Part shown: piece by piece, positions 2,880 through 58,269 of the stretch | Numbering within the stretch: position 1 is the first letter of the stretch | Layout of the letters: each line of letters opens with the position of its first letter | Source: Thalia democratica | Lineage: Eukaryota | DNA length: 64,000 nucleotides | Assembly: GCA_965202585.1 (NCBI GenBank) | Contig: OZ241826.1 | Location: forward strand, 94,054,001 to 94,118,000 | Direction: 5' to 3' | Made by a program: the position numbers and the translations under genes | Notes under the pieces: generated by a model | What the model saw: only the letters and a program-made list of their open reading frames with translations | What the model was told of the DNA's origin: nothing | Database searches by the model: none

Positions 2880-3095
2880 TTTATAAACTCTATCCTTTCT
2901 GATGTCAGTAAATACACGAAGCATCTATCCAAGTCCGCCGTCCAATGGATTTTGATCAAATTGATCAAACAAATATTTCAACCGCTCGGTGGTGTATTGT
3001 TCGATTGATTTTCATGCAACTCTTCGCTTTATCTTTTTAACAACTTCTTCCAAATTGATAATTTTTAGAGCTTTCTCGCACATTGATTTAGTTTT
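2880..3095 (-). pseudogene. Possible decayed coding exon with an EF-hand-like loop
   Basis: Frame KSMCEKALKIINLEEVVKKIKRRVA*KSIEQYTTERLKYLFDQFDQNPLDGGLG*MLRVF. FDQFDQNPLDG resembles an EF-hand loop. Two in-frame stops. Confidence 0.3.
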
Positions 3096-5074: not shown

Positions 5075-5559
5075 TAACTTTAATTAATTTTAGTACAGTT
5101 TCGGACTTTTTTGCAGTATATAACTTTTTATACTTAATTGCTTATATTCACATAGTAAAAATTATCGATAGTTCATAAAACCTTAAAATCTATTAATCAT
5201 TTTAATTTAAAATAACAATATAATTAGTTTATTTACAAGTTAAAAAGGTAAAAATTGTTTTGCTTTTTTAAACAAAGTGTAAATGTCTTAAAGATTCTAA
5301 TTAAGTAAGAAATTAAAGTTTGGACATTGCAAGAAATTTTTGATAACTAGCACACAAATTTTTATAAACCTTTTACATACAAATTAAAATAGACAAAAAT
5401 TTATTTATTTCGAGCATAAAATCTTCGTTTTTAATTTCATATGAGAACCTTTAAGTCTTAAAAGCAAATATTAAAAACCGTTTAATTATTAATTTAAAAA
5501 CCTTAAACATGTTGTATACAATTAAATTGTTAAATAGACTAGCACAAACTTGAACGCCT

Positions 5560-6450: not shown

Positions 6451-9045
6451 AAATAAAATTTATTATAAGTATTATTAAAAATTCATTGAAATATTGAATA
6501 CTTAAATGTATTTGAAAACTGATGTATGTTTAAAAATTATTTATTTTTTAGATAATCAAATAACCATTTTAAACTATCAAGTATTATTAATACGAGTGCT
6601 ACCAAGTAAATAACACGAAGTCTTTTTAACATTTAAAAGCTTACTTATGAAGTCTATATAAAAACTTTCAAAGTATTTTCATCAAATGTCAGTTATTTAC
6701 AAATAAATAGGTTTTGTTTAGATTTTTTATCTAATGTTGTGATAAGTAAGACTTGCTTTTATTTATCAGTTAACCTTAACTGAACATTATAGGATAGTAA
6801 AGTACCGTTTATTTTGATTAAGGAGTACAGAAATATTTTGGTATTAAAAAAATACATTTAATAGATAGTTTTTACAAATAAGTTAGTAAGATAAAATGAT
6901 TTATTTACGTCATATTCTTTGTAAACAAAAATTAAATAAAAAAATCAGTAACATACTGTTATAATGCGGATTTTGTTTTTAGGTAATCTGTTTAACCCAA
7001 CGTAACGCTTCTGATTAAAACAATATGTCAAAGATCTTTTTTTTAAGTGTTGTAAAAAAAAAACTCGGTTAAAAGTTTTTTATAGTTAGCTTTGAGTCAT
7101 ATTAAACTTGCGATTTCAACGATTCTTGAAAATTGATATTGCTGTCAAAGTTATGCTTTGTATAAAATAACATATCTTTTTTTTTTTATTGTATTGCAAT
7201 TATTAAATCGTAATAATTTTCGACTTGTACATTAGCAGTAGATAAGTTAGCTCATATATGTCATATATTGCATTTTTATTTTATCAACTGTTGTTACTTT
7301 AGTACTGAAAAAAAGAACTACTTTATACTACATTAACAAATGTGAGGTTTATCTAAAATATTGACGTAAAAAAGTGTAAAACTAGATATAAAGTTTTGAA
7401 TTCAAATTAAAAACTAAAATATTGTAGCTATTTAAAGTTTCGTACTCATTAAAAATAATTGGTATCAATTTTTGAAAACTGTGTTTGATTTTGTATTTAC
7501 AGGATATTCTATGAAGTTGATTTACCTTAATAGTTTAATGATAAGTACATTTTATGTATAAAACAAAAAATATTTAATTAGAAACATATTTAATATATTC
7601 ATTTAAATTAAATACTTTAAGTTTAATTAATTTGAGTATTAAAACTTTATAGTTGACAAACTTACAAAAAAAAGTAATTGAATTTATTTTTGTTTATAGA
7701 TGGAGTATAAATTATTTTTTAACTTTAGTTTTACTAGGATTTTTATGATTTTAGTTTTTTGTATGACATATCGTAATAAGTACCTAAAATTAATATTTAG
7801 AATGATTTGGATTAATCAAAACTAAAAACAGTTATAATTAGATTGTATAATTTGCTATAACATAGACTATGTTACTGTAAAAGATAAAAACAGAAGTATC
7901 TGCGTTGTTTTATACCACATGTTCAACTTTTGCAAATATTTTTCTTAAATACTGTTACAACTATTTAGAAAACTGTCAGTTAATTATTACTGTCTTGTTT
8001 GTACTTTTGTAAATTACCTCAAGTTTTGTCATCTTGCAAGTAACAATCAAAAAAGTTTGTTGTATAAATTAAAATTAGTTATTCATAGAAATTTTGTGTT
8101 ACTGTTATTAGATAAATACTAATTTGTCTATTCAATTCAACATTTTTTTTGCAAATTTATAAGCTTTATTATAAAAATAATTTTCTTATTTCTATTACAA
8201 CAAACTTTAAACTGTATTTTAGTTTTAGATGCAGGTGTTTTTTACAATATCGTTCATCTAACACTTAACTACATTTAATAGGTTTTGTACTAAAATTTCG
8301 TCAAAATTTTTAATTTTTACACTTGTTCTAAAATAATTAAAGTGTTTTATTTTAAGTAATTTTTTGAAAACAAAGTTCAGATCTAATATTTTATAATTGA
8401 CGAGTTAAAATGTGCTTTTTTATTTCCCTACGAAAAATTTCTTAACTTTAGGTAGTTGGTTAGGTAATTAATTAGAAATATTATAATTGAAATCTACAAT
8501 TCAGTAAAGATGAAATTATAATTCAAACTATTTTTAGTACTAATATCAAAATTAATTTTTTATAAAAATAAATAGTAGTAACAGTACGTAGCATACTAGA
8601 TGACTTGAATGATTATCATAATACTTAAAATATATAAATACTGTTTTTAAATTCAATTATTTATAGTTTTATAATTGTTGAGGTAGTTTTTATTCTATTT
8701 GAAATAAATAAAATTAAGATATTTGCTGTATTTAATACCTTTTTTAACAACGAAACTTGAAAACATAGAAAAAATTTAAGTTGGAAAAAACTTAAAATTT
8801 AAACTTATTGATGATTTATATAATTAAAACAATTGTAAAGCAACTGATATTTTTAAATTTTACTTTGAGTTTACTGATTGTTTCGTAGTTTAACTCTTAA
8901 AAGTTCGATCCCAATGGAAATAAATAAGCATTTTATATTAAAATACTTTTAGTTTAGTAAATGTGACATGAATTTTAAATCAGCTTAGTTACTCAATCAA
9001 ACAATTTAATTCAATTTTAACAGCTCTTCTTCATAATTTTGACAT

Positions 9046-9408
9046 ATGGATTACCAATTTAGAGGTTTGCTCGACATTCAACCGATGGAAGGTAGAAATG
9101 GTTGTACGATAACCAGGTTGGTTAACCGTAAAAATTTCAACTGGGCTATAATTGATTCAACAGTGTATGGATTTTGTTTGGCAAGTTTTATAAAAATGTT
9201 TGTTACTACTAGATGTCAGACCTCATATAATGATATGAAGCGTTACATTGAAAATTGAAGAATCAGTTGTTTTTATACGGTATTAGGTGAAAATCATTTG
9301 ATTCCTGATGCATTATTGAATGGATCTGTTGCTGCTTTCAGACAGTTTATCAAGAATGCTGATCCAAATTCAAAAATAGTTCGAATTTTCGTAAGGATTG
9401 ATTACTAA
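9046..9408 (+). pseudogene. Orphan 120-aa gene, copy 1, with a premature TGA at codon 71
   Basis: The frame continues past TGA (9256-9258) as RISCFYTVLGENHLIPDALLNGSVAAFRQFIKNADPNSKIVRIFVRIDY to TAA at 9406-9408, the same length as the intact paralogues, which have GAA or GGA at this codon. Acceptor-like ttttaacAG ends at 9023; AATAAA at 9471. Confidence 0.9.
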
Positions 9409-9789
9409 ACGTTAGCTGGTATTTTGTATAACGTTATTGTTTACTACTATTTTTGATCGTTACGTTTTATAATAAAATGTTTGAGTTTTACAATAAATAA
9501 ATAAGTTATCTATATATCAATAGTGTTTTGTTGTTGTTGGAACTACCTTTTTTAGAAACTATCGTCAGACTAGTTATTAAACAAAATGTATACATAGTAG
9601 TAGTTATAAAATAAAGTACGTTTTTGCACTTATGAAATAAATAGATCAAAAATTGGCAGTAATGTATTAACTTACTTGAATAAATTTTTACAATTGGCTT
9701 CTATCTTCAGTAAAAGTATTCCATGGATCGCAGTAAACAGCATTTTTCAAAACAACAACAAAAATAAATGGTGACATTTATCAATTTCT

Positions 9790-9922
9790 ATATAAAAATT
9801 TAATTCCCGCCACAACAACTATTTTTGGTAGTAATTTTCAAACAAAAAAATGGTCATTTGCGGGCCACATTTTACTTTTTCGTACCGATTTTGCCTGTGG
9901 GCAGCTGTTTAGCCATCTCAGT
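9790..9922. mobile_element. Old hAT-type MITE right-end remnant that predates the triplication
   Basis: gcgggccacattt...gcctgtgggcagctgtttagccatctcag resembles the right end of the element ending at 62059. Homologues occur in the other two copies (~34285-34410, ~53820-53935). Confidence 0.35.
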
Positions 9923-10027
9923 AACTAAGGGATTTAAATTGTGGAAACGCTAAGTTTAAAAATCTCATCATGTATCAAAGTGTAAAACATTTGGTCGGTA
10001 TAAAATTAAGCACCTGTTTACACAATC

Positions 10028-12213
10028 GGGTGGATGTCACTGTTGCACGAGCGTCACTTTTCGACGAGGGGATACTTTTGCACGAGCGGACACTTTAGCA
10101 CGAAGGGTCACTTTTGCACGAGCGGACACTATATCACGATGGGACAATTTTACACGGCGTCATTTTAGCACAAGGGGCCACTTTTGCACGCAGGGTAATT
10201 TACATTTTGGCACGATGACATTTTAGCACGGAACATCAATTTTGCATTTTGGTCAAAAGTTTTTTAGCTAGTATAACTTTTTTTTTACATAAAAAGAAAC
10301 TAAAAACTAAAATTTAATAACATACTTATATTAAAGTCAAAAAATAAAATATTTAAATTTTTAAACAGTAAAAAGTAATGTTAAAAACAAACTAAGGAAA
10401 GATAAAACAAAGTTATATATAAAAGATTCATACCAGGTACAAAAAATTTAATTTATTTAGAAACTAGGATGAAACATACTTTAAGTGTAAGTTAATTATT
10501 CTAGTTTATTTTGAACTTTAATATATTAATCAACAACTTGTCATCAAAACCTAGACCATTTAAACTGAAAGACACATGAAGAAAAAAAAAAGTTAACAGA
10601 AATAGTTTATTTATTAAAACAAAGATAAAAACATAATTTGATATTTAATTCATAGGTTAACATGAAAAACAAAACTTTAACCACAAACTACTTAACTTCG
10701 CTTTGATATAAATTGTTAGTATTGTAGATCGTACATTGTAGAACGATCAACGTCAAATATTTAAATGCATTGACTAACAACAAGAATAAAAACCTAACGC
10801 TTCAACGACATTAACAATAGACTGGCCATATGAATAATAATTAAATGCAATAAAAAAGCACTCATTATTTATAGAGTAAAGGTGCTGCTAATAAAATTGA
10901 ACTACTAATTAAGCTAAATATTAAAATTAAATCAACGGTTGTTAAAAATTATTTATTAATTTTACTAACACAAATATAATTCTCATAAAACTTTTTTACT
11001 TTAATTGAAATTCATTAAAAATTTTGCAAGAAACTAATTTATTTGTGAATTTGTACCATATTTAAACTGACCGTAAAAAAAGGAATTCTGATAAGCCTAA
11101 TTATTGAAATGTTGCAGCGGTTAAAGACTAATATAGTATATTTTCTTTGAATATAAGCTTAAACTTCCAAATGTTACTCTATCATTGGCTCATCATTATT
11201 ATGCAACATTATAGTAATGAAATAATCGAAGTTCAAATCATTAAAAACACGCTCTTTTATTTTTATTTTTATTCTCACGCTAAATTAAAAATTAAACTAA
11301 AAAATATGCATCAAGTAAAATCTGAAATACATTTCACTTCATAAATTAACTTTTTTTTTTCATTAACAATTCTTTAAAATTAAAATATATCTAAAATATT
11401 TGTTTAACAACTATATAATGCTAATCTTAATATCAACATAATTTAAGTAAAAAATAATATTCAAGATTCGTATTTTAAAGCCTTACTAAATTAGATTTAT
11501 CTTTTTGTTTAGAAATTAACGATTTTCAGACAAAATTTATTTAGAGAATTCAAAATTGTTTTTATTTGAAATTGGAAATTTTAGTTTATTTTAGTTAATC
11601 ATCTAGTTTATTTGAATTAAGATTAAGAATATAAATTAATGAATTGTGGTAACTGTAAAACTTCAAATAAAAATATTTTTTTAAGAATTTTATTTAATCA
11701 TTGACGACGTCTTTGCCGAAACTTGGTTTGTAAAATAATTTTTTGCAAGAATAAATTCATAAAAACTTTAGATTCAAATTTCATTAAAAAACTACCACAT
11801 TTATTCACTCAAAACAACGTGCGTTTAAAAGCGAATATTGTTTAAGTTGACAAAAAAATATCTAAGTTTTTATTTGAAAAAATAAAACATAGAAGCCTGC
11901 AAAAGTGAAGTTGCGATCAAAATTGACTGATTGTTTAAAATTTTCTCAGTTCATAAGTATATCCGTGAAAATATAACACCGTGCAAGAGTGACGTATTGC
12001 AAAAATCTCGCCATGCAAATGTAACGAGAAAAAGTTTTGATGTGTAAAAATATCACCGTGAAAAAGTGACGCCGTGCAAAAATGTCCCTCCGTGCAAAAA
12101 TTTCCCTCCGTGCAAAGAGTGACCGTGCAAAAGTGTCTCCTCGTGTTAAGTGACGCTCGTGCAAAAGAGTCGCCTTGCAAAAGTGTCCCCTAGTGCAAAA
12201 GTGACCCAGTCCC
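10028..12213. mobile_element. Foldback/MULE-like non-autonomous element, ~2.2 kb, with long TIRs made of 17-18-bp tandem units
   Basis: Arms at ~10028-10245 and ~11975-12213 are built from (G)TCACTTTTGCACGAG-like units in inverted orientation, with GGG...CCC termini. Flanked by ACACAATC / ACAAAATC. Paralogous empty sites carry a single TACACAATC (34183-34191, minus) or TATACAATC (54036-54044). Confidence 0.9.
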
Positions 12214-13577
12214 ACAAAATCATATTATGACTTGAACTTAATTTAAATAAGAAATACTTTATGGAAGTAACAAGTTTTATGATGTAATATTGCTTTTATT
12301 TTGTTTCTGGTTTTAACTAAGTTATTAGTAGTTCAATCAACTTTCGTAATTTACTTGTTGTGAATTGTTTTGTACAGAAAATTGTAATATATTGCAAATT
12401 TCAAAACTTACCAAATTTTAAAACTTACGCTTCTATTAATTAACTTGTGGCTTTAAAACAACTTTGGTCATAGTGGACAAATAGGAAAAAATTGCTAGCT
12501 AACGATAGCTAACAATAACTTAATAGTAGAAATTATTGTTTTAAAAGTTGAGTTTTGTGAAAAACGTTCAACTTAAGAAGCTTAAAAATCTTATGGAAAA
12601 CAGTTGGTTTTTTAATTAATTTCAGTTTGAAATAGTTTGCTGCCTGCACCACACTAATCTACTAATTTATAGATAAAAATTACTAAGTTAATTTATCTAA
12701 TCAAACAGTACTTAAAATTCATAAACATTTGTTAGAATTTCAAATTATCTTTTGAGTAGTTATAAACTGTTTTATAAGTTAAAAGACATTAAACATCTCT
12801 TTGTTTTTTGTTTGATTCTTTTTTTTTAGATAAAGTTAAAGATCTTTCAACGCAGCAGGCGAGCATGAATACTCTGAAAGGAGTGAAAAATACGTAGAAG
12901 CTGTAATTATAAAAAGTTCTATAAAGCAGCTGTGAAATTTCTCAAAAGCTGTACTTGGGGTACTCCTGAATGGACTTTACAATAACTTTTGTATTGTATA
13001 TATGATATTGTACGATGTCAATAACTATTAAACATATGTTTGGTTTTCTAAAACATTATTTTTTTTGTTTTCTTAAATACTGTTTTAAAGTACAATTATA
13101 ACTTATTTTAGATATACTTTGACTTTTAAATAAGAAAAAGACAAAATTCAAATAAAAGCAAACTTTGGGTTTTCTTAGAAAACTACCAACACTGTAGATG
13201 GAACTCTATAAGTGAATTACGATGCTGATTAAGATGATGTAGTCATAGAGAGCTGCAATAAATTTCATCCTGAACTCAGGAATTCTAAAAACGTCATTTT
13301 TAACAATTAGTTGAATTTTTCTGTCATGAATAAACAGAAACATCTGTTTAATTTTTTTTTTTACTTATTTGACATAAGGTTCAGTTATAACATTTAATTT
13401 AAAAACAGTAAGCAAACAAGAAAGACTGTCTTTTAATTCTAACAATTGAAACTTCCTTTCACCAATAAATGAGGCTTAAAAACACTTTATATTTACATGC
13501 TTCAGTATGTAAAACGTTGCAAAATACTTTTTAATAATTTATATTTTTAAACTATAGACTCATAGTACAGTTGTATG

Positions 13578-13603: not shown

Positions 13604-14406
13604 GAAGACAGTAGAAATGTTTTTGTGTCAAAAACAATTGTTTTATATTGTACTGTAGATCATAGTTTTTAAACTCATTTACATAATCGCCATTCTTCAA
13701 TAGACATCGCCCCTTGAAAAAAATATTTAGTTTATTAAATAATGCATTTAATTTTTTTGCACTTTTTTTATTTTATATTATGATAGATTAAAGAGGCCGT
13801 GCTGTTTGATTGCTTTATGTATATACAAAACTTAAACTTACTTTATTTAAAATAGATTTAAAAGATTTAAAAGTTTGAAATAAGTTTACATATTGACTAT
13901 GTTTTTACTTTGTTATGAAATCTAGGTTAAATTGTTTTTATTTTTTTCGAAAACCTCGTACAATACTTCTGTGCACTTTTAAGCAGTCATTAAAGTCAGC
14001 TAGTAAAAATTTATTGTTAAATTTAATTATAAAAAGACCTAAATCATACAATTACCGACTATCTTCATTAATTTTTTAATTTTTTGTTGCCTAACAGTTT
14101 TATCATATTTATTTGAATGTTTGTATCAAAGTGCTCTGTTTATAAAAATATTAATATGTCTTATAATTTTTTAACTGGTTTTCTCAGCACAACAGAATGT
14201 AGCTAAAATTGCTCGTAAACATACATTTTAAGATTAAATATATTGATTTTTTTAAACTGGATAAATGTTTTTTAGTTTTAAAAATTCATTTAAAAATTAT
14301 CTTTTTATTTAGTCTAGTCTAAGATAATAAATCTAATTACATTTATAATTTTGTAGTTTTTATGTGATCAGACTGGTATAAATTCTAATCTATTGATATA
14401 AAATCC

Positions 14407-14800
14407 CAACTATCAAATCACAGTAGATTGCAACATTAAAACCATCACAAGACAGTAGATCACAACGATACAACTATAAAATCATATCATATTACATCAA
14501 TACAACTATTACATCACAGTAGAACAAAACAACATAAGTATCACAGTAGATCGTTAATACATCTATGATATCACAGTAGATTGCAACAATACAACCATCA
14601 AATCAAATCACATTAGACCGCAACAATACAACTATCACATCAAATTAGACTATATCAATACAACTATCAAATCACATTAGACTATATCAATACGACTATC
14701 ACATCACAGTACACTGCAACAATACAACTACCACATCACAGTAGATTGCATCTCTACAACTATGACATTACAAAAGATCGCAACAATACAACTATCACAC
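14407..14800 (+). repeat. 32-bp minisatellite, about 12 degenerate units
   Basis: Consensus CAACAATACAACTATCACATCACAGTAGATTG. The same unit occurs at 58051-58224 and 62978-63160. Confidence 0.9.
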
Positions 14801-16009
14801 TATTTTTGATAGCATATTTTATTTTTTTATAACTTACAATAATTAGTATTTAAAAAATGTTAAATTAGCAACTTACTTGAAAATTAAGGTTTACTCTGCT
14901 ACAATTAACTTAGATGAAAAATATATTTTATAGACTGTAAAACATCTCTAACTATTTATTTATGTGTACTTATCTAAATTTGCAAGCTAAAAAATAATGT
15001 TTTATTAACTTGTTTTTATAATATTTAGACAATTTAGTATTTAAAAAACTGGTAACATCCCATATCGTATCTTAAAATTTACAATAGTTTATTGCCCTAA
15101 CTTTCTTTATATAACTATTTTGGCTTAAGGTTTGAGTATAACGAAAACAATACTTTTGATAAAAACTTTATAAGGTTTTTTTTTTACTAAATATTCTTTT
15201 AAAGTTTAATGATGAACCTTGTTCTTTTAAATTTTAATAGTTTTTATAAAGAAAATTGCAACCCTATACCTAATGAGCAATTTGCATTGTTTAAATATCT
15301 AGGTGTAGATGTTGACGGTTCAGGATAAATATCAGAAAATTTAAAGATAAATCAAAGATAAATATCAGAAAGATAAAATCAAACAACTGATCAGCTTGGT
15401 TGATGTCCCCTTAGTTACACTAGTGGTTTAATTACTAAAAAATACAAGTGAAACCAATAAACTATTAGTATCATATTTATGTTTTGAGAAAAGTAAATTT
15501 GAAGCATTACTGTTTTTCCTATTTTAAGAAATACTCATCTGCGAAATTGAGAAAATGAAGAGTTATTTTATCATTAAAAATGATAGGTATAATGTGTTTG
15601 TGTTGCTTATCTATAACAAAGTAAACAAGTTCTGATATATTTCCAATCAATTTTTATTTTTCGAATATAAAAAACAGTAAGCTTAAGACTTTAATTTTTT
15701 AGTTTTTTGGAAATGCTTTTTTTTTATTGTGTTAACTTTTAATAAATTAAACAAACTCTATTTCAAGTACAATGAAGTTTATTTTAAACTTAAACGTAAG
15801 TTTATTAATTTTATAACGAACTTGTTTGTAGTTTATTTTGTTAAATTTTAATATTGTTAATATAACAGAATTTATAGCATATATTTATCTATTAAACTAC
15901 AATTGTTTAATAAGCTAGTATATAGGTAACCTTACAGCCTTTAAAGATTTTTTAAAGGTTGTAGAGAAAATTGGCTTTAAGAATTTTTCTTGCGGAAAGA
16001 TGAATACAT

Positions 16010-17093: not shown

Positions 17094-18541
17094 TCATATC
17101 TCCAGTTTTGGAATCGTCAAAAAGAAGTTGCTACCGTCTGTTGCCGTGCGACAAGATTCAATCGACCATTCATTTTTGTCAGCATCGTAACAAAGAACTT
17201 CAGATGCTTCAAACTCAAAAACTAAAACTTTTCTCCCCATACCTATGGCGTGAGTGAGCCAAGAATATGGAGAATACATGCCAGATCTATAGGTTGGGTA
17301 ATGATTAATAAATACAAATGCGTTTGATGTAGAGTCGTACATTTCAAGGAATTTCTTACCAGATCCTATCGCAAACAATTTGTTCTTTATAGCAATTAAA
17401 CTATGCATCGATGCTCTTTCTTTCATGCTGGGCATGTATGTCCATTCATCAGCTATGTGGTCATATGCCTCAACAGTGTTTAAAGACCCACCGTTAAATC
17501 CACCAGAAACAACAATTCTTTCTTCAAATACTGTGCAAGCTGCACTTGATCTAGCTTCTTTCATGCTTGCGACATTACCCCATGTGTTGTCATTTGTATC
17601 AAAAAAAATACAAGTTGCTGTATCTTTGTTTGCCAACTCACCTCCAATAAAATAAACTTTACCTATAAAGCCACAAGCACAATAACAAACACGATCATCA
17701 AACATATCTCCTACAACTTCTAAAGAATCAGTAGCAGTTGAGTATTTTTCAATTTTTTTTAAATCTCTACCTTCATCGTGTGAACATCCTAACAAGTAAA
17801 CATGACCTTTTAAATATACCACTGGTGTGGTACGATATGGAAAACGACGGTTTTTTGTGAGCGAACTAGCTTTTCTACATCTAATAAGATTTCTACCATC
17901 TATTTTGTCCACGAAACTTGTATTTATATCAACATCGCTGTCTACCGATGAGAAATAGTCTCCGCAGTGCAAGATATCAAAGTTGTTTTCCTTGTAATGC
18001 CTCGTTGTGAAACATGAACTTGGCAAGTGTTTATAGTACGATTCTATATTCTCAAGTATCTCGTTTATTAGTGCTAGACACTCATCAGCTTCATGAAAAG
18101 ATGTGGATTTGTTTAAAACTTGTACCAGAGCAGGTTTTGTCAGTAAAGGGAGGCGAATTAGTAATAAGACATTTTTTGCATGTTTGGTTCTCTCATCAAG
18201 CCTGTAACTTACCCATTCATTTGCCGCGGAGAAAACTTCAATTTCTGAAGTGATGTGTAAGTTAGAGCTTGAAATAATTCGTTTCATCAGTGAAAAATCT
18301 AACTCTAAGAAGTTGTCAGTTTCGGCAACTGTTGTGAACCAAAGTTGAATAAAGTTTAAAGTCAATTTAGAAAGGTCATTCAAGTTGTAAAGTTTAGACA
18401 AAAAATAAAAAGTTGCTACGTTTTGGAGTTTTATTTTACTCTTCATGAGTTTAAGCACACTATCTTCCAAATTTTTATCAAATTTTATTTGGTTAAATTT
18501 CATAACTTTCAAGTATTTTATCACATCTCCCGGAAAGGTAC
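17094..18541 (-). CDS. Kelch-like (KLHL-type) protein, exon 2: degenerate BTB C-terminus, BACK domain and Kelch repeats
   Basis: The 476-aa open frame contains BACK motifs (NVATFY, FLELDFS, SSSNLHITSEIEVFSAANEWV, LLLIRLPLL) and Kelch repeats (VYFIGG, W..VASMKEARSSAAC, IVVSGG..VEAYD..W.YMPSM). Acceptor aactttcAG at 18543-18542 (phase 1); TGA stop at 17096-17094; AATAAA at 17051-17046. Confidence 0.93.
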
Positions 18542-46110: not shown

Positions 46111-49100
46111 CTTTTTTTACCACCAATGTAAATTACTTATATTCAGACAAAGGTGGAGTTTTTGCAGTTTAATATTTTTCTAACACTTTTTATTGGATTA
46201 AGTATTAATTTAAAGAAGCACCTAAAGCTTATTTCTTACTTTTTAAATAGCTTATATACATTTCTGTCTTTGTAAACATATTTATTATCTACTTCTAGTC
46301 TATAAAAACTTTATCAATTACTGTCAAAAACTTATTTAGAATATTTTCAAAGACTTTTTCGACAAATAATTTTATAAAACTTTTCGTAAGTTTACTATTT
46401 TATGTAAAACATATAATTTACTGAAACAAAACAAAGTTCTAAATAACCCTTTTTTGTAGTTAACTTATACTTTGATAAATAATAAACTTTCTAAATAATC
46501 ATAGTAATAAATTAAATTTATTAAAAGACAACTTATTTTTTTAGCTTGTATGACAAAATTCTCAATTTGTAAAAAGTAAAATAATTTCTCTTGCTGAAAT
46601 TTTTTATTAAATTAATTGTTTTGAGGATGTAATTAGATACATGAAACAAGTAACAAAAATGTGAACACTTCTTAAGTATGAAAAAAAAGATGGGTCAATA
46701 CTACCATATTACCATACGTAATTCTTTTTTCTCTCATAGTTGACTCGTTCGTAGATGAAAAACTACAGAGAGAAATTTATCAAAAGCATTATTATAAGTA
46801 AAGAAATATATGATAAAGTTACTCAACTGTAAGATAGTGGTTGTATTAAATGTCGAATATTTTACTAAATGATAATTTTTATTTTTGCAAACGTTTAGAA
46901 ATAATTTAAAAGCATATCGTGTTACTTTATTATGTTACTAAGAGACTATATTTAAACTTAATAACTATAAATATTAAAAGTGTACGTTTCTCAAGGAAAA
47001 AAAAAGTTTTAGATAATTAAAGTATTATAGTTTTTCTAAATTTGTTTTAAATTAAAATCTTATAGCTAATTACAATACTTTTTTCGCTTTAAAAATATAT
47101 TTATTATTCTATTCTGAAGTTCGATTACTGACTTAAGTATACTATAAAAAAACTTAATTGTTTTATGAAAGTAGCAAGTTAAATGATACTCGTTTCAAGT
47201 TAATTATTACTTTACATGTTTAACTATGTAAAAAACATGTTTAAATTTGTTAAAAAAACGTTATTTACCTATTATTTCTTTGCCTTTAAGTAAACATTAC
47301 AGAGCTTATATAGCATTTAACCTGCAACTACAGAAAAAACAATTGTGCGAAACTTTTTACATATAAAATTAAAAAACTTTGTTGTTAACTAACTCTTACA
47401 ATTAGTGCTTGAAATAAAGTTTAGTAACTTATTATCTTTTTTATTGAAACGATTATAATACATTCTAGAAATAGTTTCATACTAAAGTTAAAGCAGTTAA
47501 CTTATCTTAACGTAATTGTTGGCTTTTATATACTTTTTGTATAATAAGATAAAATTAGATAACTAACTTACAGAAAACTTACTACTAAGTTACTGCAATA
47601 CTCAGTTTAAAACTCTTAAGTATACAATTAATTATTATTTTTTCTGAATCTAATCAAACTGTAAAAAACTTTAATTCTAACAAAATTTGTTTTTAATTCT
47701 GTCCATTAATTTTTGATGTCAAATTAAAGTACTTAACTTTTGCTAGTATCTACGATATTATAATACACACGTTATTTTAATCTATGAAACTTAAACATTT
47801 ATTCTCAGTTTATCTTTATAAAAAACTTATACTCCATGTTTAAAATATTTTTAAATAAAAACGCTAATAACTGTTATCTAAAACATCTAATTAATTTTAA
47901 GATTCATTGTAAAACTCAAAAGATACAGCATCAAAATTTATTTTTAGAATTTATTTGCTTTAACTACAGTTTTCAGTCTCATTTTTTAAAATTTTTGCTT
48001 CATGTTTAACAAATTGATTTCAAATATTTTTTTCCCAGCTTGTTATGAAAAAGTACTTATGTTGTTAATTTCAGCCTGAATACTACATGCTAATAGTTGT
48101 AAACTATTACTAATAAATAAATACAATGCCAATTAAAAAATTTAAGTTATTAATTAGTCATACTAGAATTTTTAAAATTTAAATTTTATATATATTTTAA
48201 TGTAAAGTATTAATGATAACAAGTTTTTTTAACTAGGAATTTATTTTGAATATCACTAAGTTAATAAACTCTTTAAATTTTTATAGTGAGTTATACATAT
48301 AAGAAATTTAAAAACTTTAATTGAAACACTAATTTTCTATATTTATAATATACTTTATCTCTTCATCAAAATCTATCAATTTAAATGATACTAAGTTAAA
48401 CTTAAAGTGTGTAAAAAGTGAACATTATAGGTATAATATTTACTTAATCAAATAAAAATTAATATTTTTTCATTATCAATCATGATTGCAACCGGTTGAT
48501 TATAAAACACCTCAATTAATCTATTATAAGTCGAACTGTTTAATACATGATTATTCAAAATACTATACTAAATGACACACAAATAATCTTAATCTCTAAT
48601 TTTAAAGGGTCGTAACAAAAAAAAAATAAAATAGATAAACTTAGTAAAAAAACATTTTAAATAAGAAATTTCTCCTATATATTTATTTTCGGACTTTCAT
48701 ATAAACATGTCATGGTTACTTTTTAATTCTAAACTTCTGTTGTTTTGCAAGATGTTTAGTTTGCACAAATTAGCTTTTTAATTGTACTCCTTTATAAGTA
48801 ATGACAAACCATTAAAATTATTTTTTGATATGTGTATTTAAAAAAATACTTATATTAATAAAACTTGCTGCGTAATTTAAAAAATAATGGAATAAAATCT
48901 TTTATATTATAGTTTATATTGAAAGAAAAGTATTTTTATTAAATAAAAATTATAGTTTTCTCAATTTACTTCTAGTCTAAAACAAATTCACCAAATAAAA
49001 ACCAACAGTTTTAGTAGACTTTTACGTCATATATTTTATACTAGATATCGCAGTTTTACTATTTATATAGCATATATGTTAAATGAGAAAAAAAAAGCTT

Positions 49101-49217: not shown

Positions 49218-49967
49218 ATGTTTCAGTTGAATAGAAGTGAGTTAGTGTCACTTGCTAAAATGTGTCATAAAAATAATTTTTATGAGGATGCAACTAGCTA
49301 CATGAAAGAAGTGATAAATAAGGGAATACCTCTAAACTTTGAAGAAAGAAGTATGTTATTTGAAAGTTATGGGAAGCTTACACAACCGTATATTAATTTC
49401 TTGCTTTCCCTTGATGACCCGAGTGTAGATGCAAAACTACAGATAGAATTATACCAGAAAGCAAAATCAAAAGTGAACAGATTTTGCTATGAAGCTATAC
49501 AATTGTTAGACAGTGACTGTGTAAAAATTGATACTGATGATGAATCTGCTGCTGATTACAAACGTTTTAAAGCATGTTTACATTGTGAAAAAGCTGATGT
49601 TTCAGCAGGTGCAGAAAGAAAATACGAAATTCGTGAAGCAATAAAGCTATATAAGGAAGCATATGATATTGCAACAAAGAATCTCAATCCAGCGCATCCA
49701 GTCACACTCAAGATTGCGATTAATTTTTCTTCACTTCTCTTCGATATTCACGAGCCTCATAGAGCTCTTCACATAGTTAGAGAAGCCCACATAAAAGGTT
49801 TTTCAAACCTATTTGCGTTACCTGACGAGTTGAAAAACAGTGCTAAAAAGTTTTTAGATGTACTAAAGGACATCTTGGATCAGGCTCAATTTAGTTTCGG
49901 AATTCAGTTCATGTTAAAGGCTATTTGTTTAATGGCATTAATTTTATGTTGTTACTTAATTATCTAA
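49218..49967 (+). CDS. Highly divergent 14-3-3-like protein (249 aa) with a C-terminal hydrophobic tail
   Basis: Colinear with the 14-3-3 consensus: ELVSLAK, YEDATSYMKEV, LNFEERSML..Y, YKEAYDIA..L.PAHPVTLKIAINFS, LKDIL. Single coding exon; tgtttcAG acceptor ends at 49205; AATAAA at 50040-50045. Confidence 0.92.
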   Translation: MFQLNRSELVSLAKMCHKNNFYEDATSYMKEVINKGIPLNFEERSMLFESYGKLTQPYINFLLSLDDPSVDAKLQIELYQKAKSKVNRFCYEAIQLLDSDCVKIDTDDESAADYKRFKACLHCEKADVSAGAERKYEIREAIKLYKEAYDIATKNLNPAHPVTLKIAINFSSLLFDIHEPHRALHIVREAHIKGFSNLFALPDELKNSAKKFLDVLKDILDQAQFSFGIQFMLKAICLMALILCCYLII

Positions 49968-50410
49968 TTATGAACTTGTATAATTTATTTACAAATGTTG
50001 CGTTATCAGATTATCAGTTGATGTTTAGTCGTTTGTTGAAATAAACTTGGTTATAAAGGTTCGACTACTAATATTTTTTGTAAATAATTCTTTCATTGGG
50101 CTTGTTTTTTTTTGGTAGTCTAGCTTGTAAGTCTAATTAATTTAATTAATCTATCGATAAATATAGTAACTACTAGTTTATTGTGCCAAGAAAGCCATGA
50201 GAATATCTATTGTTGTATCCTAAGTTTTACCTTTTGTAAAACTTAAAAACTCAAATTAAGTGATAGCTTAACGTTAACTTTTTAAATTACTGTTTTTATT
50301 AGCAATTTTCTTTATAATAATACTAAGAATTTTAAAATTTTCGTGATTTGGCATACAACTTACGTTTTAAAACAACAAAAGTAAAGGAAAAAGTGCTTAA
50401 AATTACTGAT

Positions 50411-50458: not shown

Positions 50459-51136
50459 AACCGAGAAATTTTCAATCTACATACGGCTTTTCATCCTTTC
50501 ATATGAAGCAACCATTTCCTGGTATTGTTCAAAGACTGGTCACAGTCTAACAAAAGCTTGTGTTCTGATGATAAAAGATTACTATCAACCCTTTTGTAAA
50601 TCTTGAGCTTGTCTCACGGCGTATGAAAGTCCAGGCTTCTGCTCAGCAGACGTTCTCGTTGTTTTTGTTGATCATATTTAATATAAGCGTATCAAATGTT
50701 TTGCCTAGTAAACGTTCTATTAAACGTTGCATGGCAAAAGACAATGCTGACGTCATTGATCAATACTATCAAATGGTTGCATAAATTTGAGCATCTTAAA
50801 CCGTTTTTTTTTAGATTGAAGACTATGTTTTTTGATTATACAATTTTAAAACATATGAAATCTGGCTATTGTAACTTACTGAACTTAACTTACTAAAGCA
50901 TCTTGGACATATTTTAGACTTTATAAATATAAAAAATATGTAGTATATTTATTAAAATGGATCATATACCAAAAATTAGTTGTTGAAGCAATTTATTTTA
51001 AATTCTACTAAACAGAGTTAACAACCTTTGTGAATAGCACCTTTATTGAGCACATATACAGATTTGAACACATTTCAAACTAAATTTAACTAAAAAATCT
51101 AGTTAAAAAATTAATTTGATGGTAATACCCAGATTA

Positions 51137-51967
51137 ACTGAATGCTTCTTAAAATGCAACAAATGTTAAGTTATCGAATTTTTTAAACTTTTTTAATACA
51201 GTAAAATTATCGACCGTTTGTTTTTGATATTAACACTTTCCACTGTTTTTAAAATTTATTGAGACTACTGTTTCTGATTTGAAACATTCTTAACTTTTTT
51301 ACTAGTCTTGATATAGATTGAAGACACTAGAATCCGGATTCTTCGATTAAACAGGGTGTCTAGTATTTTATTAGGTTACGTTTAAATTAAGTTATTTAGA
51401 TAGAGATGTTTTTTTTAAATTGTTATAAAATTATTGGGACAGTAATCACTCCAAAATCTTGTACAAACTTTTTGTTTTAATGTTTTTTTCCTAGGACAAA
51501 AGACAAAGGATTTCAAATACTACCGAATTTAGTTGATTACTAATTGTTAAATTTTTATTCAGTAAAATTAGATAAATATAACAAATTTATTATGTTGTTC
51601 AAGCAAGTAAGCTTCTGAAATCGATAAATTTTTATGACGAATTTTAAAATAAAGCTTAAAAACAATAAAAAGAAATTGATCTGAAAACAATTGTTTTAGT
51701 TTTTAGGAACTTTTAATTACCTAAACAATTTTATTAGTTTTCCTGTAATTTGTTGGTAATCATTTCGTTATGTTATCAAATTCGTTATAGTTTTTTAGAA
51801 CTTTTTTTTACCAAAAAAAAAATATTAGTTTTCATTTAATTTTTTGGTAATCATTTTATTTCTGACAAACAGTAAAAGTTTTATTTATTATGTTGTTAAT
51901 TAAATTTTTTTTAATCAAAAATATTTTTAAAATAAGTTAGTGTTTTGTTTGTTAAGTACCTTTTTGA
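51137..51967 (+). repeat. Segmental duplication block A, second copy
   Basis: Direct copy of 1-818. It abuts block B directly, without the ~7.1 kb that separates A and B in copy 1. Confidence 0.95.
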
Positions 51968-53063
51968 AATAATGCAAATAATTTTTGAATAATACTGTTA
52001 CAACTACTTAGAAAATTATCAGTTAATTATTAATGTCTTGTTTGTACTTTTGTAAATTACCTCAAGTTTTGTCATCTTGCAAGTAACAATCAATAAAGTT
52101 TGTTGTATAAATGAAAATTAGTTATTCATAAAAATTTTGTGTTCTTGTTATTAGATAGGAAGTAATTTGTTTATTCAATTGCACATACTTTTGGCAAGCG
52201 TATTAGCTTCATTATAAAAATAATTGTTTTAACTCTACTATATAAAACTTAAAATTGTATTTCAGTATTAGATGTATGTGTTTTTCACAACACCATCCAT
52301 CTAGAAGTTAATTACAATTAGTAGGTTTTGTACTAAAAACTCATCAAAATTTTGAATTTTTACACTTGTTCTAAAATAGTTAAAGTATTATATGTTAAGT
52401 AACTTTTTAAAGACAAAGTTTAGATCTATCATTTTATAATTGACGAGTTAATATGTGCTTTCTTATTTCCTTACGATAAATTTCTGAATTTTAGGTAGTT
52501 TGTTAGATTATAAACTAGAAATATTATAATTAAAATTTACTATTCAGTAATGATGAATTGATATTTTAAATAGTTTTAGTACTAATATCAAAGTAAATTT
52601 CAATTAAAAATAAATAATAATAAAAAGTACATAGCATACTAGATGACTTGAATGAGTATCATAATACTTGAAATATATAAATACTGTTTTTTTATATATT
52701 TATACTTTTATAATTGTTGAGGAAGTTTTTGTTCTATCTAAAATAAATAAAATTAAAATATTTGCTCTATTTAATACTGTTTTTAACAACGAAACTAAGT
52801 ATGAACAAACTTAAAATTTAAACTTATTGATGATTAATATAATTCAAAACGTTTGTAAAGCAACTAATATTTTTAAGTTTTACTTTTAATTGAATGTTTC
52901 GTAGTTTAACTCTAATTTCGGTCTCAATTAAATAGAATTATATATTTAAATTTTTTTACTTCAGTAAATGTAACCTGATTTCTGATTAAAATTTTTAAAT
53001 CAGCTTAGTTACTTAAATAAACAATTTAATTCAATTTTAACTGCTCTTTCACATAATTTTGAC

Positions 53064-53426
53064 ATGGATTACCAATTTAGAGGTTTGCACGACATTCAAC
53101 CGATGGAAGGTAGAAATGGCTGTACGATAACCAGGTTAGTTAACCGTAAAAAATTCAACTGGGGTGTAATTGATTCAACAGTGTATGGATTTTGTTTGTC
53201 AAGTTTTATAAAAAAGTTTGTTACCTCTAGTTGTCAGTCCTCATATAATTATATGAAGCGTTACATTGAAAATGGAAGAATCAGTTGTTTTTATACGTTA
53301 TTAGGTGAAAATCATTTGGTTCCTAATGCATTAATGAATGGATCTGTTGCTGCTTTCAGACAGTTTATCAAGAATGCTGATCCATGTTCAAGTATAGTTC
53401 GAATTTTCGTAAGGATTGATTACTAA
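53064..53426 (+). CDS. Orphan 120-aa protein, copy 3 (intact)
   Basis: Complete ORF of the same length as copy 2. The upstream acceptor-like AG is changed to TG (ttttaactg at ~53035-53043). Confidence 0.8.
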   Translation: MDYQFRGLHDIQPMEGRNGCTITRLVNRKKFNWGVIDSTVYGFCLSSFIKKFVTSSCQSSYNYMKRYIENGRISCFYTLLGENHLVPNALMNGSVAAFRQFIKNADPCSSIVRIFVRIDY

Positions 53427-56051
53427 ACGTTAGCTGGTGTTTTATATAACGTTATTATTTACTACTATTTTTTATCGTTACGTTTTATAATAAAATGTTT
53501 GAGTTTACAACTAATAAATAAGTTATCTATATATCAAAAGTGTTTTGTTGTCGTTGGTATTACCTTTTTTAAAAACTATCTTTAGACTAGATATTAAACA
53601 AAATGTATACATATTCATAGTTATACAATTAAATGCGTTTTTGTACTTATAAATATTTTAGACCCACAATTTGCAGTAACGAATTCATTTACCTAAATAA
53701 TAATTTTCAAATGGCTTCTATCTTTAGAAAAAGCATTTCCTGGATAGCAGTAAACAGCAATTTTCAAAACAACAACAAAAATAAATGGTTACATCAGTCA
53801 ATTTCTATATTTTAGTTTAATTTAGCCACAACAACTTTTTTGGTAATAGTTTTAAAACAAATAAGTGGTTCCATGCTGGCCACATTTAATTTTTTCTCAC
53901 CGCTTTTCCTGTTGGCAGTAGTTTAGCCACGACAGTATTTTAGGAGTTTTAACGAAAACGTAGAGTAGAGAAAGGCATTTTTATTCTTGTATCAAAATTT
54001 TAAACATTTGGTGGGTAAATAATTAAGCACCAATTTATACAATCTTATTATGACTTAAATTTAATTTAGCTATGGAATATTTTACGCAAGTAATTATTGT
54101 TATGATGTTGCTTTGCTTTTATTTTGTTTGTTGTTTTAAATAAGTTTTTAGTTGCTCCACAAACTTTCGTAATTAACTTGTTGTGAACTGTTTTGTACAG
54201 AAAGTTATCATATTTTAATGCTATTACTTACTCTTTTATTTATTAATTTATGGCTGTAGAACCGCTTTGGTCATAGTGCACAACAGGAAAAATTTTATAG
54301 CTAACGTATTTTTTATCAATAGCTCGATAGTATAGAAATATTGTTATAAAGTTTAATTTTGTGAAAAACTTTCAAGTTTAGAAGTTTAATAACCTTATGA
54401 AAAACAGTTAACTGGCTTTTTTATTTATTTCAGTTTGAAACAGTCTACAGCCTGCAATACATTAGTTAATTATTTTATAGATAAAAGATTAATTAGTAAG
54501 TTAAACTAATTAATCAAACAGTACGTACAAACCATAAATATAACTTCAGTTTAATACTATCTTTTAGAGTAGTTATAAGCTGTTTTGTATCATAAATACA
54601 TTGAAATTTCTTTTGTTTACGAGGTCGTAAGATATCTTCGATATAATTAAACCTATAATACACAAATGAGGATAAACAACTATCTAATTTTCTGCCTAAC
54701 CTTACTTAAACGAACTGTGTAATACAACAACAAGCCTACAACAATCTTGTCTTGACTGAATATAAATTATTTTAAACTTAAACTTTATTAAGCAGATTTT
54801 TTAAGCTGTCATAGTTTCAGTTTTGTTTATGACTTGTTCTAATAAGTGACTAAAATTAGTTTTTGAGGTAATTAAGACTAAATAAAAAATAAAATCAGTT
54901 AAAACCAGTGTTTTATATTTTGCTGTAACATAGATAATATTAGTGTAAAAAATATAAACAAAAATTATCGGAATAAATTTTATCAGGTGTTCAATTTTTG
55001 CAAATAGAATTTAAAATTTATTGTTAGAACTCTTTGAAAACTGTAAGTTGATAATAACTGTCTAGGCTACCTCATGCTTTTAATCTCGAAAATACTAACT
55101 AACTATTTTTTTTCTATTTAAAATGTAAATTAATTCTATTGACAGAATTATTGTTTTACTATTATTATTATTTGTACTTAAAAACTGATCAAAAAAATAG
55201 GACAAAATAATTCTTATAACGGAAAATTTTTTTTGTAAACTAGTAAAAAAACAACTTAAATAGTATATTTATTATTTCATTCATAAAAAACTACATTTAT
55301 TAATATAAGGTTACTTTAGTAAGAATAATTTAACAAATTAATATAAAACGACATAATGTTTAAATTTAAATGTTATTAATGTTTAGTTAAGGTTCAAAAC
55401 AATAATCTTTTTAACAAACTGAAAAATTTACAAAAAATCTCAGAGTAATTTTTTAGGCGATTAAAAATTTTAACAATTTACTTTACAAAGCTTTGTTTTG
55501 AAATTTTATAAAGTTAAAAATAAAAATACATATACATTTATAAAATATTTGATTAAAAAAAAACCTAAATTTAACATACAAAATATTTAAAGATACAGTA
55601 TTAAAAAGTTACATTAAAACTGAAAAAATATTTAAAAAAATTGATAAAGTTTTATAAAAAATAACCATCTTAAACATAATAATTCACTAACATAGTTACA
55701 AAAAAATTAAGTTTTTCAACTTGATAAAAAAAAATTTGTCTTATTTTACTATTGAAACTTAAAAAATATTTTAATTAAAACTTAGATTTTAAAATATAAG
55801 TTTATTGCTTGTAATAACATAAATTAAATAAAAAAAATTACACGAAGCGTTACAAAACATCATAACTAGTTATGCTACTATTGACATAAAGTTTAAACTT
55901 ATCTTTCTTTTTACTTTCAGTGGAAACTATATTGTTTATTAAAATGATAGTGACCTGTATAGTACAAGCACTAACTGTCGACATACTTAAATATTTTAGA
56001 AATCTGTTGTATTATTGTTTGTATAGTTTTTGAACTTATGCTTATCTAACA

Positions 56052-56548: not shown

Positions 56549-58050
56549 AACAAAACAAACCTTTACATATTCTAATACTTAAAGTTTATTTTGTGCGTAA
56601 AAATCTTATGACGTCACTAAGCGTGGCAGAGTGCAGTTATTATTTTAAATCTTTATACGATAAATTTTGATTCTTCTTTTTTGTTTTCAAGTAAAATAAT
56701 AATTCATAATAGATAAAAGTTTAACTAAACAAAATAATTTTTTATTGCTTAATATTGAAAAATACTTACAAAGTGTAGATTTTGATTTGAAAAAGTTCTT
56801 ATTTCTTCATATGTTCCTTAAACTACATTCTACTTAATTACTGACAAAAATTTTAAAGTACTTTAAGCAATTATAACTAGTGTGAAATAAAAGTTGTGCT
56901 AATTTAATTTTTAAATTGTAATATCTTTTTTTTATAATGTTAAACATATTTTTCCCTCAAGACAAAGTTTTAAACCTTTATTCAAAACAAGGCTCAAGTG
57001 TGCTAAAAAAATAATTCGTCTAATTGTTCATAATGTGAGTTTTTTAATGCTTAAATAATTTCGGCTTTTCTTTACATATTTATATAGTTGTTTTTACTCA
57101 AAAAAAAAAACAAACTTCATGTTGTTTAAATTAAATCTGTTTACTTTGCAAATGTTGTTTTGATTACTATCGAGTTGACGAAAAATAATAACAATGATAA
57201 TAATAAAGTTTTCCATGTCCATTTTAACTTGTATCGTTAAGCTTTTCCTTGTCTTTTAAAATAAATATTCAACAGTATTTACAACTTAAGTACAACAGTG
57301 TAAAGATATAACAGGCTTACTACTATTTATTTAAAAATTATAAGAGCATAGACTTACTACTATTTAGCTTACTTTATTATCTAGTTTTTAAAAAATACTT
57401 TTTAATGTTTTATGAAAACAAAGCCAAGTTTGAATTTGGGAAATGCTTGTGAAATTATGAAAAGTTCTATCTGATCTACAAAAAAATGCTCATTTTTACA
57501 GGTATAATTTTTTATCAAAAGCATTATTTTTAAATTTAAGTATTAATATAAATCAAATAAGCATTAGAACACTTTTTGTGAACAAAGAGAAGATGTCATA
57601 AAGGTCCACGTCAGTTTTCTAATAGTTTTGTAGGGTTTTACAACTGAATTTCAATTAAAAATATTTTTTAGAAACAGTTTTTTATGATTACATAAAAATT
57701 ATAAACTGTGTATTTTTTAAACACAAACTTCATACAGGTAGCAATGGTTATCATTTAGGTGATTTAAAACTTACTTATGCTTGTTTTTGTATTAGTTGAT
57801 ATTTTTAACATACTTTTAACAATCATTTCTACAAAAAGAAAAAAAATTATTTATTTTTAAAGTGATTTGTTCAATGAACAAACCAACACTTTCAAATTTT
57901 TATACTGCTCAAAACCAATTTGTCTTCTGTGTTTACATCATTTTCGAATTCATAAAAAAATAAGTATGTTTGTTAGCAGAAGAACTAAACAAACTGTTTA
58001 GAGCCCTACTTCGTATTACTTGTTGCTTTCGGTCTAAAGTCTTCAAAAGT

Positions 58051-58224
58051 TTGCAACAATACAACTATCACATCACCGTAGATCACAATGTTACAACTAG
58101 CACATCACAGTACATTGCAACACTAGAACTATTGCATCACATTAGACTGCAATGTTACAACTATCACATCACAGTAGATTGCAACACTACAACTATCACA
58201 TCAAAGTAGATAGCAACGATACAA
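58051..58224 (+). repeat. 32-bp minisatellite, about 5 units
   Basis: Same unit as 14407-14800. Confidence 0.9.
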
Positions 58225-58269
58225 ATAAGTAGATAAAAACTATCAAACAAACATTTTTTTACTTATTAC

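Follow-up and report, generated by a model that had tools for sequence, protein, structure and literature searches.

Probable stop-loss origin of a hydrophobic C-terminus in a 14-3-3-like gene family of a pelagic tunicate

Results

Organisation of the locus

The window analysed here, a stretch of 64,000 nucleotides, carries on its forward strand an uninterrupted and intronless open reading frame of 249 codons (49218-49967), which runs from an ATG to a TAA exactly as had been claimed for it; the DNA that surrounds the frame has a GC content of ~24%. Working from the 5' end of the gene downwards, codons 1–223 (49218..49886, +) encode what Pfam, AlphaFold2 and Foldseek each assign to a 14-3-3-fold body of nine helices, with replacements at the phosphate-binding residues. 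Below this sits CAA (Gln) at codon 224 (49887..49889, +), a triplet that we believe, from its alignment with the stops of paralogous genes, represents a former stop codon. Codons 225-249 (49890..49964, +) then form a hydrophobic extension, for which homology to untranslated sequence, base composition and hydropathy all point to a former 3' UTR. The frame is closed by a TAA (49965..49967, +), kept in the four intact copies of the gene that bear the tail and in two degraded ones (L021 and L023), and is followed two codons later by a second in-frame stop, TGA.

Upstream of the gene, a CRE-like TTACGTCA (49022..49029, +; ~196 nt before the ATG) is kept in nearly all of the 12 aligned subfamily copies, degraded ones included, and may serve as a promoter element, to judge from its sequence. 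Closer in, a putative TATA-like TATTTATATAG (49060..49070, +; ~158 nt before the ATG) is present in the four tail-bearing copies, with a related TATA-like TTTATGTAAC in their sisters. On the other side, an AATAAA at 50040..50045 (+), 73 nt after the stop, is a putative polyadenylation signal; it is conserved throughout the subfamily alignment, sister and outgroup copies among them.

The region at 51180..54216 (+) is part of a large segmental duplicate, repeating sequence found at 43-12393 of the window, downstream of the degraded copy L021 that lies just before the window itself (G000:C1:94052192-94052892). Direct repeats within the window are 81–94% identical, with a spacing of 42–51 kb. A processed retro-pseudogene was considered and rejected, given that homology among copies extends 1 kb or more into both flanks, the upstream motifs are conserved, the unit lies in a ~44–51 kb segmental duplicate and the frame is intact; the recent retro-pseudogene that the original prediction had named as an alternative falls with it, on the grounds of the shared flanks, the segmental duplicate and a complete lack of indels (see below).

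A predicted 14-3-3 fold with an altered phosphate pocket

The ORF protein matches the Pfam family PF00244 with an E-value of 2.6e-27 and a score of 96.3 bits against a curated cut-off of 33.2 bits, the match extending over residues 12–220 (profile positions 1–219 of 223), which bears out the proposed membership of the 14-3-3 family; 14-3-3 chains in the PDB are matched at ~1e-21. An AlphaFold2 model of the single chain, built from a 36-sequence alignment, contains nine helices (pLDDT 94.5, pTM 0.87), and comparison with human 14-3-3 structures in Foldseek gives TM-scores of 0.80–0.89, with an rmsd of 2.0–2.7 Å and 24–27% identity—the expected fold is thus recovered. Set against canonical 14-3-3 proteins (human zeta, theta and sigma, together with the epsilon-like protein of the genome itself), the likeness therefore takes in the nine-helix fold at ~24–27% identity over the domain, a conserved motif in helix 7 (LNPAHPV against LTPTHPI) and N173 (zeta numbering, used throughout), which is retained as N169.

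The differences are concentrated in the pocket. In canonical 14-3-3 proteins K49, R56, R127 and Y128 bind phosphate; in HMMER and MAFFT alignments the equivalent residues here are G52, Q56, C123 and E124, such that the clamp is gone, with N224 and W228 additionally replaced by I219 and A223. The residue numbers of the original prediction (G52, I59, L63, C123, E124, N169, I219 and A223) are correct on recount, and its equivalences for K49, R127, Y128, N224, W228 and N173 stand; those for R56 and R60 do not, as a deletion of three residues in helix C brings these two positions opposite Q56 and N60 rather than I59 and L63. Neither alignment leaves a basic residue at R56 or R60, and the central claim, that the phosphate-binding residues have been lost, is confirmed. 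Judged from sequence comparison and the model together, the ORF product is a 14-3-3-fold protein without phosphate-binding residues.

Prediction of a homodimer gave an ipSAE of 0.49, as compared to 0.00 for the best control, and so passed the mark set for the method; among the calibration proteins, 21 of the 30 whose solved structures are pairs did likewise, as opposed to none of 23 whose solved structures are single chains. Since many 14-3-3 dimers have been solved, the pass may stem from structures that the predictor had already learnt. At least 95% of the contacts recur between runs, the partner is modelled at a pLDDT of 86, and the interface is formed by residues 4–24 and 57–81, i.e. the helices A, C and D used by canonical dimers. 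We take the prediction to indicate a likeness to 14-3-3 dimers, not binding.

A large divergent family in the host genome

Canonical 14-3-3 proteins are normally few in number and among the most conserved of all eukaryotic proteins. A profile search of the host genome, covering 802 Mb in 1833 contigs with a GC content of ~25%, found at least 146 matches to PF00244. These are clustered in arrays, with positions at 93.8–94.8 Mb (which holds the window) and 37.3–37.6 Mb of contig C1, at 18.9–19.2 and 73.5–73.7 Mb of C2, and on C6, C4 and elsewhere. One match is a canonical member, an intronless epsilon-like 14-3-3 (G000:C2:31707822-31708484; 352 bits) that is 73% identical to the epsilon protein of the mollusc Pomacea and 72% to that of the insect Drosophila. 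A few others are multi-exon loci of canonical type; all remaining matches are divergent single-exon copies. Intact frames of 190–403 amino acids are carried by 55 of the 58 loci that were read, and many other members of the family contain stops.

The three-residue deletion in helix C, the missing K/R/R/Y clamp and the missing acidic, disordered C-terminus are common to the whole of the divergent family, whose members end 0–6 residues past helix 9; in each of these respects they differ from canonical 14-3-3 proteins. It had been proposed that the hydrophobic tail replaces the acidic C-terminus. This does not hold, as the family as a whole is without the acidic tail and the hydrophobic one was added later. 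A further difference lies in number and tempo: the divergent family comprises more than 100 intronless, fast-evolving copies, as opposed to a few highly conserved genes. Pairwise dN/dS varies by subfamily from 0.17–0.28 (L063-L066) up to ~1, which indicates birth-and-death evolution in a family where some genes are under clear constraint. Taken together, we are dealing with a large lineage-specific expansion, in which tandem and segmental duplications have multiplied the genes of a pelagic tunicate, probably a salp.

The identity of the host is supported by its mitochondrial COX1 (contig C1833), in which AGA/AGG codons fall at conserved glycine positions and TGA encodes Trp, genetic code 13 restoring the canonical COX1 motifs; decoding of AGR as Gly marks it as a tunicate. 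In a COX1 search the top matches, at 92% and 88%, were entries of a marine catalogue. Host DNA is also present in TARA Oceans metagenomes, as befits a pelagic organism.

Outside the genome, relatives closer than canonical 14-3-3 came solely from marine metagenomes or Logan contigs in a collection of 1.84 billion representative proteins, and most such marine relatives derive from TARA samples that also hold the canonical 14-3-3 of the host; the first named match in the protein search was a canonical plant 14-3-3. One Logan protein (P0004) has its best match in this genome at no more than 52% identity, from which we conclude that the divergent family exists in at least one other species. For the tail-bearing clade, neither a word-indexed protein search nor an exhaustive HMMER search found an orthologue (the best match in the latter being 51% identical and tail-less), the clade was absent from JGI metagenome contigs by both exact-pattern and protein-guided scans, and the exact ORF protein was absent from a collection of 15 billion proteins.

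Origin of the C-terminal tail

The tail is carried by just four of the 55 intact copies: the gene described here (L010, the ORF at 49218-49967) and L018, L013 and L006. Each has 249 codons; they lie between 93.88 and 94.77 Mb of C1 and are 93–96% identical in DNA. Over the last 25 residues, the highest 15-residue Kyte–Doolittle mean is 2.7–3.0 in this clade vs 1.0 or less in the other 51 intact frames. A maximum-likelihood tree groups the four in a single clade (100/100), which arises from within the tail-less members on a long stem of 0.59 changes per site, with the canonical gene far outside.

Alignment of these genes places the CAA at codon 224 exactly opposite the working TAA of four intact, tail-less paralogues (L012, L014, L015 and L057), and opposite TAA, TAA, TAA and TAG in the sister pseudogenes L022, L024, L025 and L026, respectively. 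The 75 nt of DNA that encode the tail are homologous to the 3' UTR of the tail-less paralogues, a homology that runs on as far as the shared AATAAA at 50040. In composition, too, the tail (49% T, 25% GC) resembles the downstream UTR (45% T, 24% GC) rather than the body of the gene (29% T, 34% GC), where no 75-nt window exceeds 39% T. The aligned stop codons, the homology to UTR and the UTR-like composition together identify the tail as a stop-loss extension, and we have high confidence both that the ORF belongs to the family and that its tail arose by a change of TAA to CAA at codon 224. The original prediction had allowed that, should orthologues stop before the hydrophobic segment, the tail would be read-through of an AT-rich UTR; this is indeed the pattern found, with paralogues taking the place of orthologues.

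A ciliate-type code, in which TAA would be read as Gln, was also considered for this codon and rejected: the host is a tunicate, Gln is encoded by CAA or CAG throughout the frame, and there is no in-frame TAA or TAG. On this reading the tail is a new C-terminus being born by way of a single T to C change at the first base of the stop.

Hydrophobicity of the tail

The tail (residues 225-249) reads FSFGIQFMLKAICLMALILCCYLII. Its last 15 residues (235–249) are non-polar and uninterrupted and end the protein, as originally described; a span of 19–23 residues takes in K234 and Q230. The Kyte–Doolittle mean reaches 2.61 in a 19-residue window, which corresponds to the last 19 residues of the protein with nothing beyond the hydrophobic core, and 2.99 in a 15-residue window; the classical transmembrane threshold for the former is 1.6. 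AlphaFold2 models the tail as a straight helix continuing helix 9 (H203-248), at a pLDDT of 83–87. At the opposite end, the protein opens with a polar stretch (MFQLNRSELVSLAK) that becomes helix A of the fold, leaving no N-terminal hydrophobic signal; the lack of such a signal, combined with one hydrophobic segment in the last ~30 residues, is the arrangement expected of a tail anchor.

How unusual is such a peptide? When compared to stop-free segments of 20–40 amino acids in all six frames of the window, it is extreme: just 0.3–0.6% are as hydrophobic, even though 11% lie over the classical transmembrane threshold, and some selection for hydrophobicity is on this measure conceivable. The relevant null is nonetheless the sense strand of the family's own T-rich 3' UTRs. 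Hypothetical read-through past the stops of the other 51 intact paralogues, with the downstream piece of each analysed separately, gains at least 20 residues in 17 of 51 cases. In seven of the 51 the 15-residue mean of the new segment is at least 2.0, and in two it is at least 2.7 (L071, 3.12; L075, 2.70), as set against 2.99 for the real tail. Since T-rich codons encode Phe, Leu, Ile, Cys and Tyr, the added peptide is a greasy helix; and, given that read-through of the family's UTRs is often greasy, hydrophobicity is no evidence of design. For this 14-3-3-like family, a transmembrane-like tail is thus nothing out of the ordinary once a stop has been lost, in agreement with published work on U-rich noncoding sequence (bioRxiv 10.1101/2022.07.20.500724; see below).

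Maintenance of the tail-bearing frames

Across the four tail copies there is no indel event in the 750-nt coding sequence vs 10–13 events per 500-nt block of flank, and mean divergence is 6.1% in the coding sequence vs 7–17% in the flanks. No premature stop has arisen in ~87 substitution events (P ~0.006), a value from a simple neutral simulation that is somewhat optimistic in that intact copies had been chosen. Within the clade dN/dS is 0.6–1.0, or ~0.8 when pooled, and is not significantly below 1. The worry attached to the original prediction, that a ratio near 1 might signal a dead copy, is therefore justified to the extent that these values are not distinguishable from 1; the absence of both indels and stops points the other way, towards maintenance of the reading frame. 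The four tail-bearing frames, each taken as a whole, appear to be maintained by selection, though fast-evolving. Equally, the copies may be subject to drift, and the choice of intact ones may account in part for their open frames.

Dead copies in the same subfamily comprise two of the tail type (L021 and L023) and six tail-less sisters (L022 and L024-L028), disrupted by stops, frameshifts and deletions; the intact fraction is accordingly 4/6 for tail-type copies and 0/6 for tail-less sisters, a pattern also compatible with a gain of function.

For the tail alone the data are sparse: six substitution events, two of them synonymous and four non-synonymous (K->N, C->F, I->V and L->S), a probability of 0.66 that no stop would have arisen, and ~1.7 indels expected vs none observed; this amounts to no statistical power.

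Discussion

Alternative explanations

The rival reading with most in its favour is that the tail is a neo-functionalised anchor that keeps a phospho-independent dimer of the 14-3-3 type at the ER or some other membrane, the new function explaining why the clade was retained and three times duplicated. Much in the data is consistent with this: a 19-residue mean far over threshold, with the 15-residue non-polar run placed at the C-terminus; the lack of an N-terminal signal; a tail modelled as one long helix with helix 9; a frame and a hydrophobic character kept in 4/4 copies, with nothing beyond the four replacements listed above; maintained frames; tail-less sisters that are without exception pseudogenes; and a hydrophobicity that few random translated segments match. 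Against it, the tail by itself carries no statistical signal; comparable peptides would emerge from other 3' UTRs of the family, that of L071 being more hydrophobic still; the uninterrupted core is just 15 residues long, lacks a polar C-terminal flank and, if stretched to 19–23 residues, includes a Lys; and protein and metagenome collections yielded no orthologue of the clade. We regard this reading as possible though doubtful. The membrane-tethered pseudo-14-3-3 that was originally put forward thus survives in part: loss of the pocket and a hydrophobicity of membrane grade both stand, while the tail as an evolved feature of a unique protein does not, stemming as it does from a recent stop loss shared by four near-identical paralogues.

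A second possibility is that we are looking at young copies en route to becoming pseudogenes, their frames open through recency and neither body nor tail functional. The clade's dN/dS is certainly higher than that of the constrained L063-L066 group, stops are found in many members of the family, L021 and L023 are degraded copies of the very same type, and the sequencing runs that match the locus, all of DNA or of unknown type and none of RNA, cover gene and flanks evenly, as is the case for DNA. What makes this improbable in our opinion is the contrast between coding sequence and flank, both in indels (none in 4 x 750 nt) and in divergence, along with the lack of stops.

It is less probable again that the tail is an artefact of the gene model, absent from the protein either because the gene is silent or because polyadenylation or splicing of the mRNA takes place upstream of, or inside, 49890-49964. 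The DNA-like coverage of the matching runs would fit such an account, as would the fact that the tail region was UTR until recently; in opposition, the sole conserved AATAAA lies past the present stop, the family is intronless throughout with no conserved splice signal evident in the tail, and, now that codon 224 reads CAA, the tail is necessarily encoded in every mRNA extending as far as the conserved poly(A) signal. Lastly, a tail ancestral to the subfamily and lost elsewhere through CAA -> TAA is hard to credit, for although the tail clade and its sister group, taken by themselves, make one change in either direction equally parsimonious, intact outgroup genes have TAA at the same codon, 51/51 of the other intact frames end within a few residues of codon 224, and the clade is nested in the tree with a tail of UTR-like composition.

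A model for the tail-bearing clade

On balance, we favour a tail that arose as a by-product of recent stop loss and is tolerated. The family as a whole has lost its Lys/Arg/Arg/Tyr phosphate clamp and its acidic C-terminal tail, keeping the nine-helix fold and, in silico, the N-terminal dimer interface; its divergent members would most likely be dimeric, phospho-independent helical scaffolds that bind ligands via what remains of the groove. In the common ancestor of the four young copies, the TAA at codon 224 changed to CAA, with translation continuing through 25 codons of T-rich 3' UTR until an in-frame TAA is met, and the four frames, each judged over its whole ORF, appear since to have been held open by selection. 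The tail-bearing protein, if made, would be expected to be captured by the triage machinery for tail anchors (BAG6/TRC-GET), its fate being either membrane insertion or degradation.

A bolder version of these events can be entertained, in which the T->C change in the stop made a tail-anchored membrane scaffold out of a soluble, phospho-blind 14-3-3-like dimer, and the new protein was retained and multiplied to four copies as the tail-less sisters died out. We consider this unlikely; were it true, a 3' UTR would here be caught in the act of giving rise to a membrane protein, inside an undescribed, 14-3-3-derived salp family of more than 100 members.

Relation to known systems

Tail-anchored proteins such as Sec61beta, cytochrome b5 and the SNAREs have no signal peptide and combine a soluble N-terminal domain with one very hydrophobic helix at the C-terminus; a hydrophobic span that crosses the bilayer measures ~18–22 residues. 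The predicted ORF protein shares with them the soluble N-terminal domain, the lack of a signal peptide and the hydrophobic helix at its extreme C-terminus. It differs in having a core of 15 residues (19–23 with K234 and Q230 counted in) and nothing after that core, and in being conserved only among four paralogues that are ~95% identical.

The closest parallel to the tail itself is found in stop-loss extensions under BAG6/TRC(GET) surveillance, with which it has in common that one base of a stop codon is changed, that a U-rich UTR encodes the extension and that the resulting C-terminus is hydrophobic and resembles a tail anchor. U-rich noncoding sequence has been described as giving rise to hydrophobic C-termini that resemble tail-anchor signals, which BAG6 triages between degradation and membrane insertion, with nonstop variants such as SMAD4 T1657C as examples (bioRxiv 10.1101/2022.07.20.500724). 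Unlike such variants, the change seen in the tail clade is fixed, has been inherited through three duplications and leaves the frames intact; it is evolutionary rather than somatic or disease-related. The same preprint also cites de novo transmembrane segments that emerge from thymine-rich noncoding DNA (Carvunis 2012, Vakirlis 2020). The likeness here is that T-rich noncoding DNA has become coding and yields a transmembrane-like peptide, the difference being that our tail is joined to an existing folded domain and is not a stand-alone new ORF.

Significance

Neither an expansion of 14-3-3 genes in tunicates nor a tail-anchored 14-3-3 came up in our literature search, and the expansion of the fold reported here (at least 146 matches and at least 55 intact genes, with the clamp lost across the divergent family) is apparently undescribed. 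It is a larger and firmer novelty than the tail. The tail nevertheless provides a clean, datable case in which loss of a stop codon in a T-rich genome gives a folded protein a transmembrane-like C-terminus, and the clade that bears it offers a natural test of whether hydrophobic tails of noncoding origin are disposed of by BAG6 or put to use as tail anchors; a further lesson is that greasy C-termini in AT-rich genomes should not be taken as design. For the family itself, the question is to what new use a fast-evolving, phospho-blind and tandemly amplified branch of the 14-3-3 proteins is putting the fold.

Local duplication and a possible gene conversion tract

Comparison of the tail-bearing 14-3-3-like gene of the window (L010, C1:94103218) with another of the four tail-bearing copies (L018, C1:94470706) reveals a mosaic pattern of divergence: in the 300 nucleotides upstream of the start codon the two differ at just 1 of 298 sites, against 4.0% of sites in the coding sequence and 5.5% in the 3′ flank. 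The near-identity of the 5′ region, set beside the more divergent coding sequence and 3′ flank, suggests a recent gene conversion tract across the promoter and 5′ UTR of this pair.

At a larger scale, window positions 43–12393 and 51180–54216 form a large direct duplication (81–94% identity, at a spacing of 42–51 kb), which shows that the 14-3-3-like genes have been amplified within segmental units of ~50 kb; the partner unit carries a degraded tail-type copy, L021, immediately upstream of the window. Both copies of the segmental duplicate contain an array of 32-nt tandem repeats (14366–14858 and 58021–58259). The 74-nt bin at 50572–50645 is a dispersed repeat of very high copy number, its word depth in contigs from three runs being ~10,000 as compared with ~100–600 elsewhere.

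The window also holds a single-exon open reading frame of 476 amino acids on the reverse strand (17094–18524), a KLHL-type gene or exon with BACK and Kelch repeats (Pfam E-values of 1e-21 and 3e-20); the BTB part is absent from this frame. Elsewhere in the assembly, genes on the mitochondrial contig (C1833:8315–9631) follow the tunicate code, with AGR read as Gly and TGA as Trp, and the nuclear contigs C4 (56.84–56.94 Mb) and C757 (31294–32138) carry several degraded COX1 copies (NUMTs).

Extent and relatives of the 14-3-3-like family

Across the genome we find at least 146 matches to PF00244. The divergent, intronless 14-3-3-like open reading frames that are intact number 55 or more, and all of them lack the phosphate clamp; arrays are located at C1:93.77–94.82 Mb and 37.3–37.6 Mb, C2:18.9–19.2 Mb and 73.5–73.7 Mb, C4:73.3–74.7 Mb, and C6:71.8 Mb and 76.1 Mb. 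Estimates of dN/dS differ between subfamilies, from ~0.2 to ~1. Four members (L067, C2:74379885–74380508; L068, C2:74371156–74371776; and those at C1:94823609 and C2:18875774) have an architecture unlike that of the remaining family: these proteins are 388–403 amino acids long, and their 14-3-3-like domain is followed by an extension of ~170 residues, acidic and Ser/Asp-rich at its end. Comparison of the two intact copies (L067/L068) gives a dN/dS of 0.40.

In public protein sets, the only close relatives come from marine metagenome contigs. A Logan contig from a different sequencing run (SRR17148707; locus L085) encodes a 236-amino-acid member, P0004, with which its closest counterpart in the present genome (C4:54124041) shares only 52% identity; the divergent family is therefore present in at least one further species. 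Taken as a whole, these clamp-less genes look like a lineage-specific, previously undescribed family.
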